NCBI GenBank assembly: GCA_023213395.1
Contig: CM041465.1
Coordinates: 66,967,741 to 67,031,740, forward strand
DNA length: 64,000 bases
Reading direction: 5' to 3'
Origin: Cycas panzhihuaensis
Taxonomy: Eukaryota; Plantae; Cycadophyta
The translations under genes were made by a program, and so were the position numbers. This document shows positions 4,140-43,637 of this stretch, one piece after another. Each line of letters begins with the position of its first letter. Within the stretch, counting starts at the first letter, position 1. The notes below the pieces were generated by a model. The model was not told the origin of the DNA and ran no database searches. It was given only the letters and a program-made list of their open reading frames with translations.

Positions 4140-4625
4140 TATTAGATTATATAATATAAACTTATGTTTCTTAATGTTATTATTTCAGTCATGTCTTAAA
4201 AATTATTTAAATAATTATAAAGTTGTAAACTTATGTTAAAATTTAATTGACTTATAGATGGTTGTTGAAATGTGGAACCGCATTCCAATGAACCTCCGTC
4301 CTATTTATTAGTTTCCTAGATTCATAGAATTGGTTCCAGGAATCTAGGAGGTCTGTCCATATGCCTGAAACTAGGTTGTTTTAAGGTTGGTTATTGTGTA
4401 TTGGTTTTTCATTTATTTATTAATATAACTTAGATTAGGAGGTGGTTTTTCTTCCCCAGAAGGGATTTTCCACCTGTCAACCTTGTGTACATGTACATTG
4501 TCATATTCTGTGTTTCCCTTTTATACCTGTGATATGATGATTGTGTGCATGTGCCTATTCTAACATGGTATCAGAGTGTCATATGTTCCATTAATGTTTT
4601 TTTTGCATAACACAACTATTTCATC

Positions 4626-4715
4626 TTCTTCATTTTTTATAACAAACCCCAGTTTTTTCAGCATGGGCCATAGTTTATCCTTGTGATCATTCATATAAAA
4701 TTTTATAATCTGCTT
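4626..4715 (-). pseudogene. eEF2: Captured fragment of eukaryotic elongation factor 2 within the element A leader
   Basis: KQIIKFYMNDHKDKLWPMLKKLGFVIKNEE matches recalled plant eEF2 KQII..CMNDQKDKLWPML.KLGV.MKS.E. Confidence 0.85.
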
Positions 4716-4783
4716 TACACAAAAACTACCATTAAGACATAGCAAAATTTCTATTACCAGTCAAAATTTATGTACAAGTTAAT

Positions 4784-4864
4784 GTCCATCTTGTTCACAG
4801 AAAGAACAAGTCTAATCCTTTCTCCTAAGGCTTGACGAAACACAGTTTCAGCCTAAACACATAC
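4784..4864 (-). pseudogene. eEF2: Second captured eEF2 fragment (G-domain, NKMD motif)
   Basis: [26 protein letters not shown] versus the conserved eEF2 [27 protein letters not shown]. The stop is a CAG>TAG-type change. Confidence 0.92.
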
Positions 4865-4902
4865 ATTTACAGAGCTGTCTGTAAAAGTGATAGTAAAATA
4901 GG

Positions 4903-5127
4903 AGCAAGCAATGCTAGAGATGAGGTAGCAAAAACTACTTTAGAGGAAGTCAAAAGAACCTCTTCCCACAACTCGGAAGGAAAGGTAGCAATGATTGAGG
5001 CACTATCCATGTCAACAAGCTGGCCTTAAGATTACTGGGCTTGGATAACTCATTGAACATGCTGCTGTGCCAAAACTCCAACTTGGATATCAGGGGGCAG
5101 TGCTGCCAGAAGTTCAAGATCAATATT
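4903..5127 (-). pseudogene. UPL1: Captured fragment of HECT E3 ubiquitin ligase UPL1/UPL2 (HUWE1/Tom1 family, UBM/DUF4414 region)
   Basis: 75 codons in one frame: NIDLELLAALPPDIQVGVLAQQHVQ*VIQAQ*S*GQLVDMDSASIIATFPSELWEEVLLTSSKVVFATSSLALLA. Recalled family motif: IDPEFLAALPPDIQAEVLAQQRAQR...GQPVDMDNASIIAT.P.DLREEVLLTSS. Confidence 0.92.
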
Positions 5128-5978
5128 TACAAAATGACAATGGACTGCGATGGCACTTCTTGTCCCAAAACTGAAAATGATAACCAATGATACTATCTTA
5201 ATGTTGTTGTTTGAAGAGGGAGAACACTCTCCACTGGCACAGGGCTTACATTTTCCTCTTCTTCCTGCATGATGTCATTTTTGAGGCTATGGATATCGAT
5301 TCTAATCCAACAACCAGTCAAGAAATACATTAAATACCGCCAGATCGCCCGGCGGGCCTTGATCGTCGGTAAAGACTGGTGAACCGCCTACATCAAATAT
5401 GGGGAGAAGGAAAAATATGCATGAGAGTAGATAAGGTAACAAAACCTACGTGAAAGAAACTGCGTGAAAGAACCTACGTGAGAACCTGCGTGAAATAAAC
5501 AAACCCTCTGTCTGAACTTGGACCTGAATTTTGTCCACGTCTGGAAGCACCTGAAGTAGAAGAATGGACTTGTACCAAGACCAAGAGTCATGTCCTAAGA
5601 GACAGTAGTCCGAGCAAAGCACATGTAATGGCATACATATGCAAACTGCATTTTCTCTAACCAGAACAACGAAGGAGAGGCAATGGTTGAACCTTCTCCT
5701 ACTTCTGTCTTTGCATGAACCTCTCCACGTGAAGACTCTTTCGTTGCATGAAGCCTCCATCTGAATTGTTCGAGCCTCGACCTTGAACCAAGTAGACCTA
5801 CAACGAAAGAAGGTGTGCCACCATAAAAAAACTAGGTAGGGTTTCCTCGTCTTTACACACCCCCCCCCCCCCCTAAAACTTTATAAAGTTTTTAATTTTA
5901 ATTCAAATCAATTTTTGATTTTAACCATTAAACTTTATACTTTAATTTTAATCAAAGTCTACCCTTTTATACTTTGCA

Positions 5979-6237
5979 TTTTGATTTAAATCAAAAGTTC
6001 CCCTAATATTATATATTAATACTTTGATTTAAATCAAATGCCCTCTACCCATATTATATATTAATACTTTGATTTAAATCAAAGCCCCCACCACACCACC
6101 CACCCCCCCCCCCCGAATCCCCCCACCTTACCATGATTTAAAATCATTTTCATCTTAATCAAACTCTATTAACTTTATTACTTTGATTTAAATCAAAGTT
6201 CCCCCTATTAACTTTATACTTTGATTTAAATCAAAGT
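5979..6237. repeat. Cluster of five perfect 16-20 bp palindromes with core TTTGATTTAAATCAAA, interspersed with poly-C tracts
   Basis: Copies at 5979-5996, 6023-6038, 6067-6084, 6180-6199 and 6218-6237. Poly-C at ~5860-5873, ~6103-6114 and ~6239-6255. Confidence 0.9.
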
Positions 6238-40620: not shown

Positions 40621-40712
40621 AAGATGAGCATCTAAAGGTGAGATTAAGAATGATAAAGAAACACCATAATAGAATAAAAACACACATTTGGTGAGGATTG
40701 AAGACATATCCA

Positions 40713-40839
40713 ATATATATATATATGTGTGTGTGTGTGTGTGTGTGTGCATACATACATACATACACACACACACACACACACACACACACACACACAC
40801 ACACACACACACACACACACACACACACATATATATATA
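40713..40839. repeat. Compound microsatellite (TA)n(TG)12(CATA)4(CA)32(TA)n
   Basis: Read directly from the sequence. Confidence 0.97.
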
Positions 40840-40979
40840 AGAAAACCTATAAGATTCCTTAGATTCTCATTGCAGTGCCTTAGAAGCTAGCTTTATCTTC
40901 ATACATGTCAACAACATTGGGTATAATATTTTAGAGAAGTTCACTACTTCCCCTTTTATTTGTACCTATCCCATTTAAT

Positions 40980-41215
40980 AGACGGAGGGGTGATGAGAAT
41001 GATTCCTTCCTTGAGGCTGACAGGAGAGAATTAGCAAAGAGAGAAGCTGTAGCCAAAAGGGTTCATCCAACTTTAAACACATCCACATTTGCTAGCTTAT
41101 TCACAAGTTCTCCAACACCCACATCTATTTTTTCTAGGATGTCACAAGCTACACAATCAACTTCAGGAATATTTCCTACTACTTCATCTAGCTCTAGATT
41201 TAGCTCTCCAACAGG
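40980..41215 (+). pseudogene. NUP58: Captured C-terminal fragment of nucleoporin NUP58
   Basis: RRRGDENDSFLEADRRELAKREAVAKRVHPTL followed in frame by an S/T/F-rich tail. Recalled plant NUP58: QRRRG..NDPFLEADRRETAKQEAAAKRVHPTLH. Confidence 0.88.
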
Positions 41216-41715
41216 TCTGCTTTCTCATCTTCAAGCTCATCATCTTTTTTCTTCTCTATGCCTTCATCTTCTGTATCTAATTTTTTTTGCAACACGTGGG
41301 CATCTTGCAAATACTACACAATAAAATTTTCACACTTCTGAAATAGAAGGTAATAGAAAAGAGGCCAGTTGTTAAGCACCTAGCCACTAATGAACACTAC
41401 ACTAAATAACAGGTCCAAGATATTAACAAGCCAATGTTTTAAAAGAAACTTATATATAAACCCTGAAGAATCCATATTAATTTAAAAATAAATTAAGTAA
41501 CCAAGAAATTTCCCTGTTAAGTTCAGGGCTGAAGTCTGAGTTTCTAAATAGTCTAATGAAGCAGGTCAAACCGGGGGCCAACAAACAGTTGCCCAGAGCA
41601 TTAAATCGTAAGTAGAGTTCGACATCTTTTGGAAAGAGATATCCAGTGGCTGATCACTTAGCACTCGCCTATAACTCCCTACGTTGTTGTTGCTCTATTA
41701 TCGTAAGCATCACCT

Positions 41716-41772
41716 TCCTCCAAGTAAAGGACCAGCAAGATCCAATTATTTGTTACCATAGTGGTCTCTATC
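41716..41772 (-). pseudogene. NRPB2: Captured 57-nt fragment of the RNA polymerase II second-largest subunit
   Basis: DRDHYGNK*LDLAGPLLGG versus the highly conserved RPB2 motif DDRDHYGNKRLDLAGPLLGG (18 of 19 residues). Confidence 0.92.
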
Positions 41773-43637
41773 ATATCCCAACAATGCTTTATTTGAATAC
41801 CAATCTCACCAAATGGACAGAGACGTCAAGTTTGAAATGTACCAACTATTTTAAACACACCCCTTTAACACCTTCTAGGCCCATTTTGCATAATATTGTT
41901 TACAAAATACTGTTCCAAGCCAATATAGCTGCTAAGCTCATTTGCACGTTCAACAAGTTTAGTTTTATCTCAGCCTATTGTCTTCAAGTACCCAAGCCAT
42001 GCTTAATATGTAAATTCTTTGACATTCATACCAATTTTGGATAATGCATATTGTACACTTGATTTCATATGCCCCTCGATATGAGATTTCAATAAAATTG
42101 ATTGTGCATATGAGTTTTTCTAGGCATTGGAAGATGGTTGTTATTGCCTACATTGACAGTCAAATCCCCAAAGATGAACCTCGCATCTCTAGTTCTCTGC
42201 ACAAGTCTGTGTGACATGCAATGTCTACACAGGGGGCATTTTGCAGGCTGCAACAGCAATGACGACACATCACAACATTCAAGGTACCATTCAAAATTTT
42301 CATTTTTTTATTTTTTCATCTTTTTTAAGTTTAAAAAAATAAATTTTATTATATAAAGTTTGAAATCTAGGGTTTTAAGCATTAGTCCCTTTACACTCTA
42401 GCCCTCAGTCTCATATTCATATTCATATGACCTTTAGCTTGTTTAAAAGGGGCTACCAACCTTATAAACAAATTTTTCTTTTTATTTTTTTATTTTTCCA
42501 CTCAACATAGAGTACCTGAAAATTTGTTTATTATAACTTCTCACTAGGTCATCAGTTTCTGACAAAACCTATTCCATTGCATCTAGAATTTTCTAAGGTA
42601 TAATTTTGAATGATCATATGACCTATTTGGAGCTGATTTGATAAGGTTTTAATAAGTTCCAAGTCAGGTATTGATTTTTAGAGCTTTTTAAAACTATTTT
42701 CATAAAATCTATTTTTCATTAGATTATATTTTATCACTAAGAGATTATTTTCTACCTGGATCTATTCTGTAGATATCTACTATCAACAGACTTCATTACG
42801 ATCTATTTATTTCATTTTTTAAGATTTATTTTAATCATTATTTTAATCGACCAAAGTGACACTTTAGTATTTTTTAGCACTTTTTAAACATTTTATATAA
42901 ATGTATTTGTTGCCATTTTCAGTATAACTTATCTGTTTTACATCAGAATTTAGATCTGTCAATTTTACTGGGAAGGTGACCCACTCTTCTTCGAACTGGC
43001 ACTATTTTTTATAAGTTTTAAAGTCTTTTTGCTGATTTTAAAAAGCATTAAAATAAAGGTACTTAATAGCCTCTAATCTATCATTATTACACATTTTGTA
43101 TATATTTTTTCTCAAATTTTTAATTGAAAAGTATATTGAGTAGCCTTCTAAACTATAATTAATTATTTTACAACATTCTACAAATTTTTTATTAGCATTT
43201 TTATAATATTTTGAGCCTCAGGCTCTTGTTAAGCCTTAAAAAGAGGAATGTATCTTTGATTCACTTAAATATTAACTTCCAGGAACCCGTTTTTAAAAAG
43301 GTCAATTCAATTGAATAGATATTTCATTAATCTTCAATTTGGTATAGTTTCATTTTATTCTGATATTATTTAGTGCAGCTTTGAAGCTGTTAAACTTGAG
43401 CATCAAAGTATATCCTAAAAGGCTTATCTTAAGAACCTTTTATTTTTTCATCATCAAAGTTTCAATTTAGACCTAGTTAAGAGGATCTTAATTACAATTA
43501 AAATTTACTCATATATTCATTATATTTTAAATTTTATCTGAAATTATATCTTATAAGTTTCTCATATTTGTTGATTTATTGAGTTTTTTAACTTAGTAAA
43601 AGTATATTCTTTTTAATGTACTAAAGTTTTCGGTAAA

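Follow-up and report, generated by a model that had tools for sequence, protein, structure and literature searches.

The host-gene fragments in the leaders of LTR retrotransposons in the window (the whole 64-kb stretch of DNA analysed) can best be explained by the following model, to which a probability of roughly 0.6 is assigned. Old, silenced Ty1/copia-type elements would carry host fragments that were transduced into the leader of an ancestor copy and then spread by retrotransposition; in elements A and E the site of exchange is a slot between the PBS and the first poly-C run, and plus-strand transfer at the PBS is proposed as the route of entry. The pattern as a whole is a positional variant of known gene capture, resembling maize Bs1, with no sign of current function.

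Four elements and an exchangeable leader slot

Four LTR retrotransposons lie on the + strand of the window: A (4140-17012), D (31774-36434), C (~38582-44755) and E (51960-59795). Their features were assigned as follows.

4135-4139 and 17013-17017: TSD of A, ATGTT (5 bp), ends read
4140-4565 (+): 5' LTR of A (self-comparison pair 4142-4563 / 16587-17010, 91.7% identical; ends read)
4566-4577 (+): PBS of A, TGGTATCAGAG, initiator tRNA-Met type (sequence read); left slot edge
5188-5859 (no strand): remainder of the slot block of A, no named origin; GC 0.44 for 5401-5850; low but multi-contig depth
5860-5873 (+): first poly-C run of A, right slot edge, where homology with E resumes
5874-7080 (+): AT-rich leader kept in the A/E family, with palindromic repeats and more poly-C runs; aligns with E 53822-55311
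7082-16586 (+): gag-pol of A, Ty1/copia (Pfam Retrotran_gag_2 at 7279-7695; RVT_2 at 9826-10395 and 15635-16075)
10383-15595 (-): nested copia interrupting the gag-pol of A (Pfam gag, rve and RVT_2 on the minus strand)
16587-17012 (+): 3' LTR of A (self-comparison; ends read)
31774-32184 (+): 5' LTR of D with PBS TGGTATTAGAGC at 32173 (self-comparison pair 31774-32170 / 36036-36432, 90.4%; ends read)
32185-34090 (no strand): GC-richer block of D, GC 0.36
36036-36434 (+): 3' LTR of D (self-comparison; ends read)
38582-39020 (+): 5' LTR of C with degenerate PBS from about 39003 (self-comparison pair 38598-39000 / 44371-44755, 84%)
40200-42290 (no strand): GC-richer block of C, GC 0.364, within an AT-rich 4.6-kb leader
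43617-43952 (+): copia gag remnant of C (Pfam Retrotran_gag_2, E 7.6e-7, at 43743-43952)
44371-44755 (+): 3' LTR of C (self-comparison)
51960-52414 (+): 5' LTR of E with PBS TAGTATCAGAGC at 52403; TSD TAAAT (self-comparison; ends read)
52415-53906 (no strand): slot block of E, 1.5 kb, ending in a (TA)n run; GC 0.39 for 52415-53780; unrelated to the block of A
53907-53927 (+): poly-C run of E, right slot edge

Reading of the ends placed a PBS directly after the 5' LTR in all four elements and a PPT upstream of every 3' LTR. The PBS are taken by us, from established knowledge of plant copia elements, to be complementary to initiator tRNA-Met; those of D and E have one mismatch apiece, and that of C is split by a 4-nt insertion. 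The TSD of D matches at four of five bases, and none was resolved for C on reading of the ends. The LTR pair of E (51966-52404 / 59356-59795 by self-comparison) is 91% identical. No gag or pol was recognised in D with Pfam (18 segments). Element D is non-autonomous, C is a gag-only copia-type element, and E is a sister of A, both being autonomous in type. Among A, C and D, no nucleotide similarity was detected in LTRs or interiors, in agreement with the initial annotation, which had described the LTRs of A, D and C as different.

Composition likewise bore out the GC-richer leader block reported for these three elements: GC was 0.38-0.44 in A against 0.26-0.33 in its flanks, 0.36 against 0.31-0.32 in D, and 0.364 against 0.23-0.25 in C. 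The corresponding values for E were 0.39 and 0.24-0.30. Within the block of A, three direct repeats containing ACGTG were observed at 5441-5498, and the remainder at 5188-5859 gave no match in Pfam or Rfam.

Comparison of A with E revealed homology through the LTR and PBS that is lost at the base after the PBS and regained at the first poly-C run. Unrelated blocks of 1.3 kb (A) and 1.5 kb (E) lie between these points, and the segment is thus an exchangeable slot. The block of E gave no match in Pfam or Atlas. Runs of at least 8 C occur within the 64-kb window in the A and E leaders only, where they recur within leader repeats, and the right slot edge may mark no more than where conserved sequence begins. 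In contigs under four species labels, variability was concentrated in 4480-6858, the rest of the family being very abundant. The A/E comparison and this variability strengthen the earlier proposal of a recurrent slot, which is supported. The post-PBS position proposed along with it is exact for A, where eEF2 homology begins 33 nt past the PBS. It is plausible for D, whose GC-rich block begins at the PBS, although the H1-like piece is found 1.5 kb downstream, and it does not hold for C, where the block begins 1.2 kb past the PBS in AT-rich leader.

Host-gene pieces within the leader blocks

The pieces resembling conserved host proteins are listed below.

4611-4724 (-): eEF2 fragment b, about residues 255-295 of plant eEF2 (phmmer E 8e-6)
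4778-4849 (-): eEF2 fragment a, residues 140-163 (PDB phmmer, 25 of 25 matches eEF2, best E 0.003)
4945-5124 (-): two consecutive UBM repeats of a UPL1/2 (HUWE1)-type ubiquitin ligase (Pfam; frameshift between the repeats)
33661-33974 (-): histone H1-like stretch, candidate, globular-domain end and lysine-rich tail (Atlas score 0.83)
40582-40653 (-): DExH-helicase-like stretch (translation, by eye only)
40977-41171 (+, sense): NUP58 fragment (protein homology search, 13 matches, best E 3e-7)
about 41578-41787 (-): RPB2-like stretch, broken by stops (translation, by eye only)

For element A, the tools point to a host origin of the eEF2 pieces and, with weaker Pfam support, of the UBM repeats. 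Fragment b, searched with phmmer against 1.84 billion representative proteins, also showed 62% identity over 40 aa by tblastn to plant proteins containing eEF2. Fragment a was matched by Pfam GTP_EFTU as well (E 0.03). The two fragments are co-linear, the 3'-ward piece being nearer the PBS, with about 90 codons absent between them. The UBM repeats are also co-linear (5062-5124 (-), E 0.0012; 4945-5016 (-), E 0.0082; both under the Pfam gathering score) and gave no match in PDB or word-index searches. All tool-supported pieces of A are antisense.

In element C, two of the 13 protein matches to the NUP58 fragment were named nucleoporin p58/p45, and tblastn gave 76-81% identity over 32-34 aa; judging from the matched sequences, the fragment probably lies within one exon of plant NUP58. 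The stretch at 40582-40653 (-) is presumably DExH-like, judged by eye from its translation, and had no match in PDB or Pfam. Within the RPB2-like stretch, DRDHYGNK is followed by a stop and LDLAGPLLGG, its stop-free motif pieces being shorter than 20 aa; its 42-aa tail had no match in PDB or Pfam. The DExH1 and RPB2 assignments made for C in the initial annotation are thus readings by eye, neither having reached a significant score with any tool. In element D, three co-linear frames of the H1-like stretch look like plant H1 by eye. All three matches listed by Atlas were linker-histone clusters, and all 10 of the best family-bearing matches fell in the same family or clan, at a score (0.83) below the 0.9 level; Pfam and PDB gave no match. 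The H1 piece is a lead only, and the F-box/kelch fragment suggested for D is not supported, no tool having given it a significant score. Capture of host-gene fragments, as first claimed for all three families, therefore stands on tool-based evidence for A (eEF2, UBM) and C (NUP58) and as a lead for D.

That the protein resemblances reflect chance or an assembly artefact is scarcely credible. H1, DExH, RPB2 and F-box/kelch lack a significant score from any tool, as such an explanation would have it, but E-values of 8e-6 and 3e-7 were obtained against billions of proteins, all 25 PDB matches were eEF2, two adjacent matches fell in one Pfam family, and the cargo recurs in contigs of independent runs under four species labels. 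On these E-values, PDB matches and independent contigs, chance and artefact were rejected for A and C.

Spread, decay and the question of function

The spread of the cargo of A was assessed from contigs under four species labels by summed depth, contig depth being a rough guide only to copy number. Roughly 1-12 distinct contigs, about 10% diverged, were found per position and run under the four labels, and the cargo was present even in a run of 396 Mb, too small for assembly of a single-copy gene to be likely. Summed depth was 2.4-230 over 4888-5872, 100-2000 over 4691-4887 and 4000-70000 over gag-pol; cargo depth was about 0.05-5% of that of the family gag-pol. The PBS-proximal eEF2 part was 10-70 times commoner than the distal part of the block, which would call for later insertions in the distal part or for a single multi-jump event with subsequent deletions. 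Neither TIRs nor consistent Helitron ends were found around the blocks. Single-copy cargo, or cargo with its own TIR or Helitron ends, would have spoken for secondary insertion; given several diverged contigs per position and no such flanking ends, the cargo is element-borne and multi-copy rather than a private insertion.

C>T and G>A made up most of the differences from other copies, a pattern expected when methylated DNA decays neutrally. The cargo evolves neutrally now and is without demonstrated function. The initial annotation had proposed that antisense RNA or siRNA against essential genes would make silencing of the element costly, or that the cargo would disguise it as genic, either way to the advantage of the element. 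The silencing-cost idea has been published as an epigenetic-conflict model (bioRxiv 10.1101/777037) and for TART-nxf2 (PMC13534243). A functional cassette of this kind would suit the mostly antisense orientation and the housekeeping donors, and it has precedents in that maize model (10.1101/777037) and in the capture of nxf2, piwi and aub by TART with antisense piRNAs (PMC13534243). It is nevertheless highly improbable here. The pieces are full of stops and frameshifts, and protein identity is only 62% (eEF2) and 76-81% (NUP58), so that perfect 21-24-nt matches to the donors are unlikely now. Cargo copies at about 0.05-5% of gag-pol depth are the opposite of a transposition advantage, and none of the donors is a silencing gene. 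The search for an RNA run containing the stretch found none. With decayed pieces and minority carriers, neither the siRNA or antisense proposal nor the disguise received support.

Routes of capture and comparison with known systems

Capture by LTR elements is known from Bs1, rice, sorghum and maize Sireviruses (PMC7264820, PMC13317346, 10.1101/777037), and a review describes sense as the usual orientation of transduced sequences (PMC7264820). In its common form, with the switch during minus-strand synthesis, template switching onto co-packaged RNA predicts sense cargo, so the antisense pieces need another step. Our own reading agrees with the six antisense pieces and one sense piece counted initially, tool support being confined to the A pieces (antisense) and NUP58 (sense). 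With one sense piece among five or six independent ones, the bias is not significant alone (about p 0.1).

The PBS is the site of the obligatory second jump of plus-strand strong-stop DNA. In the preferred model, the 3' end of this DNA would sometimes be extended on a co-packaged host mRNA instead of minus-strand DNA, and immediately downstream of the PBS the plus strand would gain a complementary copy of the mRNA, giving antisense cargo. Cargo order would run 3' to 5' along the mRNA, with extra jumps producing internal skips or bringing in a second donor. Re-entry into the minus strand would occur further down the leader, where poly-G, the complement of poly-C, is a plausible landing pad. Mid-leader sense pieces such as NUP58 in C would arise by ordinary copy-choice during minus-strand synthesis. 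Being non-coding, the leader tolerates inserts, and their position as well as their antisense direction would follow from an aberrant plus-strand transfer at the PBS. Several observations run against the plus-strand model: the block of C lies away from the PBS and its one solid piece is sense, the only named piece of D is a candidate 1.5 kb from the PBS, and a "newest next to PBS" rule does not predict the depth gradient of A.

Ordinary copy-choice during minus-strand synthesis, with any co-packaged RNA as template (natural antisense RNA and complementary RNA made by RDR included), is the textbook model of Bs1-like transduction (PMC13317346). The antisense excess would then be due to chance in a small sample, or to selection against sense inserts with upstream ORFs, splice or poly(A) signals. 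The one solid piece of C (NUP58) is sense, maize Sireviruses have no orientation bias (10.1101/777037), and significance is not reached with five or six events, all in line with this account. It is doubtful, however, given that it leaves unexplained both the exact break of A/E homology at the PBS and the uniformly antisense orientation and 3'-to-5' order, away from the PBS, of the identified A pieces.

The blocks are mosaic, and 5188-5859, all of the block of E and most of that of D do not resemble coding sequence; the block of C is mid-leader and of mixed orientation. Such features favor capture at the DNA level, by which filler DNA or a fragment-bearing insertion (double-strand-break repair or gene conversion, or else a Pack-type element or Helitron whose ends are lost) entered a progenitor leader before retrotransposition, position and orientation reflecting only the tolerance of a non-coding leader. 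Helitrons and Pack-MULEs are the main plant carriers of multi-donor fragments (10.1101/777037), and a small hairpin and CTAG lie near the right end of the block of A. This Helitron-like end is, however, followed by G, not T, has no matching 5' end and is absent from E, and there are no TIRs or TSDs around any block. Different blocks in the sisters A and E with the same two edges, one exactly at the PBS, are unexpected of independent DNA insertions, and the depth steps imply that the block of A is not one unit. Thus, DNA-level capture is considered unlikely.

Retroviral oncogenes are host sequences acquired via reverse-transcription errors or read-through and then propagated (summarised in PMC7264820). 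The Cycas pieces share this gain of host sequence and its spread by the element, but oncogenes are sense, spliced, expressed and selected and replace coding sequence, leaving the virus defective, whereas the Cycas inserts are short, antisense and in the leader. Bs1 likewise carries three transduced segments, from several unrelated host genes, between its LTRs, spread by retrotransposition (PMC13317346, PMC7264820); these are sense and form an expressed chimeric ORF, in contrast to the mostly antisense, decayed Cycas pieces of the untranslated leader, which in A/E occupy a slot between PBS and poly-C run. Maize Sireviruses, also copia, contain exon fragments, with more than one in some elements (10.1101/777037), but only 3% of maize elements have fragments, with no orientation bias or fixed position reported. 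Here, four of the complete copia-type elements within 64 kb carry a foreign leader block, the identified pieces being mostly antisense.

Pack-MULEs and gene-carrying Helitrons also carry mosaics of short multi-donor fragments, with proposed siRNA cross-talk with donors (10.1101/777037, PMC13317346), but these DNA elements are bounded by TIRs or Helitron ends and make their captures at the DNA level, unlike the Cycas carrier, an LTR retrotransposon with no such ends. Drosophila telomeric elements such as TART (nxf2, piwi, aub) hold host fragments as a possible source of antisense small RNAs (PMC13534243). They are non-LTR elements with silencing-gene donors and the fragment in all or most copies, for which small RNAs and evolution of the donors have been demonstrated, whereas the Cycas donors are housekeeping genes and only a minority of copies are carriers. 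Finally, the additional, often antisense, ORFs of plant LTR elements are similar in being extra, sometimes antisense sequence (PMC7264820). Such ORFs lack a host-gene homologue, are found in the majority of copies and are mostly placed downstream of pol, before the 3' LTR; the Cycas sequence, by contrast, comes from the host, sits in the 5' leader and differs among copies.

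Element structure and leader composition

Four LTR retrotransposons on the plus strand, termed A, D, C and E, were delimited by self-comparison of the window and by reading of the LTR ends.

LTR retrotransposons, with LTR identity and target-site duplication (TSD)
4140-17012, plus strand: element A; LTR identity 91.7%; TSD ATGTT
31774-36434, plus strand: element D; LTR identity 90.4%; TSD matching at 4 of 5 positions
~38582-44755, plus strand: element C; LTR identity 84%; no TSD resolved
51960-59795, plus strand: element E; LTR identity 91%; TSD TAAAT

In A, D, C and E, reading of the ends showed the 5' LTR to be followed directly by a primer binding site (PBS) of plant initiator-tRNA-Met type, and a polypurine tract was found upstream of the 3' LTR in all four. 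The PBS of A is TGGTATCAGAG; a single mismatch occurs in the PBS of D and in that of E, and a 4-nt insertion splits that of C. The tRNA is taken to be initiator tRNA-Met on established knowledge. Pfam searches identified copia-type Retrotran_gag_2 and RVT_2 domains in A, RVT_2 together with a retroviral SH3-like domain in E, and a gag remnant alone in C (43743-43952). Given that no recognisable gag or pol was detected by Pfam in 18 segments of D, this element is non-autonomous, and its membership in Ty1/copia is presumed, by PBS and TSD length only.

Self-comparison gave 77-78% identity between the gag-pol regions of A and E, which identifies them as sisters. No nucleotide similarity was detectable among A, C and D; the view of the initial annotation that A, D and C belong to different families thus holds in this sense, all being copia-type or presumed so. 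A younger minus-strand copia (10383-15595) is inserted in the reverse transcriptase of A and splits it. This nested element has 226-bp LTRs that are 95% identical; its leader (640 nt, GC 0.37), in which no host piece was seen by eye, served as an ordinary-leader comparison. A further copia on the minus strand (60246-63966; RVT_2 and Pol beta-barrel domain) is truncated by the end of the window, so that its leader lies outside. At 20791-31363, a 5.9-kb super-unit occurs in tandem duplicate, with corresponding units 96% identical; it consists of two adjoining 2.5-kb units (~87% alike) and a 0.9-kb spacer. Across the window, Rfam and ARAGORN detected no RNA genes and Tandem Repeats Finder reported nothing scoring at least 200.

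The GC-richer blocks that had been described between PBS and gag in A, D and C were borne out by measurement of composition, and a similar block is present in E.

GC content of the leader blocks
Element A: 4578-5400, GC 0.384, and 5401-5850, GC 0.442, compared with 0.263 for the remaining leader and 0.33 for gag-pol
Element D: 32185-34090, GC 0.36, compared with 0.31-0.32
Element C: 40200-42290, GC 0.364, with flanking leader parts at 0.225 and 0.246
Element E: 52415-53780, GC 0.387, compared with 0.237

The possibility that the blocks are secondary insertions of TIR elements or Helitrons was rejected, since a search for TIRs, TSDs or consistent Helitron ends found none flanking any block. The only inverted pair around the D block (17 nt, at 32408 and 34090) was dismissed as short and outward-facing. 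In A, a hairpin followed by CTAG near 5814-5836 resembles a Helitron end, but neither the flanking T nor a corresponding 5' end is present, and nothing comparable was found in E. Some blocks also contain simple repeats. Long (TG)n/(CA)n microsatellites form an inverted pair at 40713-40838 in the C block, and a long (TA)n microsatellite occupies 53789-53870 in the E block, shortly upstream of its poly-C edge.

The exchangeable slot and candidate host-gene pieces in the leaders

An exchangeable slot is most clearly evident from the comparison of A with E. The two elements align across the LTR and PBS, and similarity is lost from the base that follows the PBS (4578 for A, 52415 for E). Homology returns at a poly-C run (5860-5873 in A, 53907-53927 in E) and extends across an AT-rich leader into gag. 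The GC-richer sequence enclosed by these edges, 1.28 kb long in A and 1.49 kb in E, is unrelated between the two elements. C runs of at least 8 were found nowhere else in the 64 kb. Within the conserved A/E leader, repeated perfect 18-20-nt palindromes, ACTTTGATTTAAATCAAAGT, are interleaved with poly-C runs (6021-6237 and 5860-6255); these palindromes might be dimerisation or packaging signals.

Candidate host-gene pieces in the blocks
4611-4724, minus strand: eEF2 fragment b, in A
4778-4849, minus strand: eEF2 fragment a, in A
4945-5124, minus strand: UBM/UPL pieces, in A
33661-33974, minus strand: histone H1-like piece, in D
40582-40653, minus strand: DExH-like piece, in C
40977-41171, plus strand: NUP58 piece, in C
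~41578-41787, minus strand: RPB2-like piece, in C

In A, translation of 4566-4760 (minus strand) matched three eEF2-containing plant proteins, with a best E value of 8e-6 among 1.84 billion representatives, and local tblastn aligned fragment b with 62% identity over 40 aa. A PDB sequence search with fragment b gave no match, likely because the solved eEF2s diverge from plant eEF2 in this region. Translation of 4757-4852 (minus strand) gave 25 PDB matches, all 25 to eEF2 (residues 140-163, best E 0.003), and a Pfam match to GTP_EFTU (E 0.03). The two fragments are antisense and co-linear, with the 3'-ward fragment closer to the PBS and ~90 codons missing between them. Beyond eEF2, two segments on the same strand matched Pfam UBM with E values of 0.0012 and 0.0082, both below the gathering threshold. 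Two adjoining co-linear matches to one family of 24,736 are very unlikely to have arisen by chance. UBM repeats are the hallmark of HUWE1/UPL1/UPL2 ligases. Neither piece had a PDB match, and a word-index search yielded for neither a candidate sharing three words within the length range, a blank that says little. Every identified piece in A is antisense, the first beginning 33 nt past the PBS, and no host identity was assigned to the remainder of the block (5188-5859). This unassigned part contains three 14-18-nt direct repeats (5441-5498), each with ACGTG or GCGTG (G-box/ABRE-like cores).

In C, a search with 40935-41321 (plus strand) gave 13 matches among 5.8 billion proteins (best E 3e-7), two of them named nucleoporin p58/p45; tblastn identity was 76-81% over 32-34 aa at 40977-41078, reaching 41171. 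The piece is in sense orientation and, judged from the matched sequences, lies inside one plant NUP58 exon, and is thus uninformative on splicing. Two minus-strand pieces of C resemble RPB2 and a DExH protein by eye. The former reads as DRDHYGNK, a stop and then LDLAGPLLGG, its motif-bearing parts spanning <20 aa between stops. Neither the RPB2-like tail nor the DExH-like piece had a PDB match, and Pfam assigned no host family in 21 segments of the C block.

For the H1-like piece in D, the three listed Atlas hits were linker-histone clusters, and all ten of the best family-bearing hits fell in the linker-histone family or clan; the score of 0.83 is below the reliability level for such hits, and nothing was found in Pfam or PDB. 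Histone H1 in D is accordingly offered as a possible lead only. Pfam assigned no host family in 18 segments of D, and an F-box/kelch piece proposed there found no support. No host family was assigned by Pfam in 10 segments of the E block, none of which could be named, and its longest ORF had no match in the Atlas.

Capture of host genes, as claimed by the initial annotation for A, D and C, is therefore upheld by database matches for eEF2 in A and NUP58 in C and by weaker scores for UBM, and is tentative in D; for C, the identity of NUP58 was confirmed in sense orientation, and no search scored RPB2 or DExH.

Abundance of the A cargo and its proposed function

Contigs of four runs with four species labels were aligned to 4100-10000, covering A alone, at a minimum of 88% identity. 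Contig depth is not copy number, and only orders of magnitude were used.

Summed contig depth along A
Mid-LTR and gag-pol: 4,000-70,000
4691-4887 (eEF2 part): 100-2,000
4888-5872: 2.4-230
From ~6460: rising again

By this profile, 4480-6858 is the part that varies in a family of very high abundance. By this rough measure, summed depth over the cargo was ~0.05-5% of that over the family gag-pol in all four runs. In each run, ~1-12 distinct contigs (usually several) covered each listed cargo position, with 88-92% identity to this copy. The cargo is also covered in a 396-Mb run, where assembly of a single-copy gene would hardly be expected. At several cargo positions all other contigs share one alternative base, indicating private mutations in this copy on a shared cargo. 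Differences were mainly C>T and G>A, an excess as expected for methylated, neutrally decaying DNA. Among the listed contigs, none spanned a junction with 31 nt or more on each side; linkage of cargo to LTR in other copies is accordingly inferred. With that linkage assumed, propagation of the cargo with the element is supported for A by several distinct contigs per position in four species labels. In all four runs, many contigs depart from this copy at ~4480, within the LTR, so that its final 80 nt are subfamily-specific as well.

It had also been suggested that the cargo could produce antisense RNA that makes silencing of the element costly. This idea is already published as an epigenetic-conflict model (10.1101/777037), and TART elements that captured nxf2, piwi and aub offer a precedent (PMC13534243). 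Such a reading would matter for conflict between transposable elements and host; it is unsupported by the present data. Stops and frameshifts interrupt the pieces, which have diverged far from their donors; none of the donors is a silencing gene; and, by contig depth, only a small minority of family copies carries the cargo. By this rough measure, cargo-bearing copies of A neither predominate nor show an advantage, as would be expected under anti-silencing capture of the TART-nxf2 or epigenetic-conflict kind. The pieces have low protein identity, which argues against perfect 21-24-nt matches to the donors today. A search for RNA runs containing the stretch found none, which is not proof of silence.

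Models of capture

Capture of gene fragments by LTR retrotransposons is known, and is regarded as rare, sense-oriented and without fixed position. The usual model is a minus-strand template switch onto co-packaged RNA (PMC13317346), which results in sense cargo. Transduced sequences are usually sense (PMC7264820), and no orientation bias is seen among captured fragments in maize Sireviruses (10.1101/777037). Host-gene sequence lies between the LTRs here, as in Bs1-type transduction, in the form of eEF2, NUP58 and, with weaker scores, UBM. By contrast with the sense cargo of that type, the pieces in A are antisense; NUP58 in C is sense.

An error in plus-strand transfer would place cargo differently. 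Plus-strand strong-stop DNA makes its obligatory jump at the PBS, and extension of its 3' end on a host mRNA would write the mRNA complement into the plus strand right after the PBS. Additional jumps would give skips and extra donors, and synthesis would re-enter the minus strand downstream, for which poly-G, complementary to the poly-C run, is a possible landing pad. Reverse transcriptases add untemplated C at template ends. Such addition would fit the distal C run, an argument that is weak given that poly-C recurs inside the leader repeats. The plus-strand model would account for the position, orientation and order of the pieces in A, where eEF2 runs 3' to 5' away from the PBS and A/E homology breaks exactly at the PBS. 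It does not fit the sense NUP58 piece in C, the mid-leader position of the C block, or the much greater abundance of the PBS-proximal eEF2 part than of the distal A block. Given these three misfits, minus-strand copy-choice and later deletions and insertions must be added to it. Alternatively, capture may have occurred at the DNA level, with amplification afterwards.

The plus-strand model in its dedicated, recurrent form, whereby strong-stop transfer errors in the copia elements of this genome write host-mRNA complement after the PBS and refill the leader slot, is given roughly one chance in four. Were it true, a genome-wide “Pack-copia” class would exist, its PBS-to-poly-C slot refilled time after time with antisense cDNA of host genes, and LTR retroelements would possess a new mechanism of transduction that determines orientation; young captures could supply antisense RNA against housekeeping genes. 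An exact-edged, PBS-bounded, mostly antisense slot would point to a specific, so far undescribed reverse-transcription error, for which, if real, this genome would be a natural study system. A non-exhaustive literature search found no description of a PBS-bounded or PBS-adjacent, antisense-biased slot in LTR elements, and a 2026 review of the field is silent on orientation and PBS.

The database sequences that best match the eEF2 piece are annotated as “hypothetical proteins” and are either fragments or chimeras. Papaver armeniacum contributes three nearly identical models and P. bracteatum one, whose eEF2 part is joined to unrelated sequence; a further chimera comes from Vaccinium darrowii. 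Given that the best matches are such models in Papaver and Vaccinium, this suggests that amplified eEF2 fragments occur in other plant genomes too. For annotation, captured fragments of this kind yield spurious “hypothetical protein” models.
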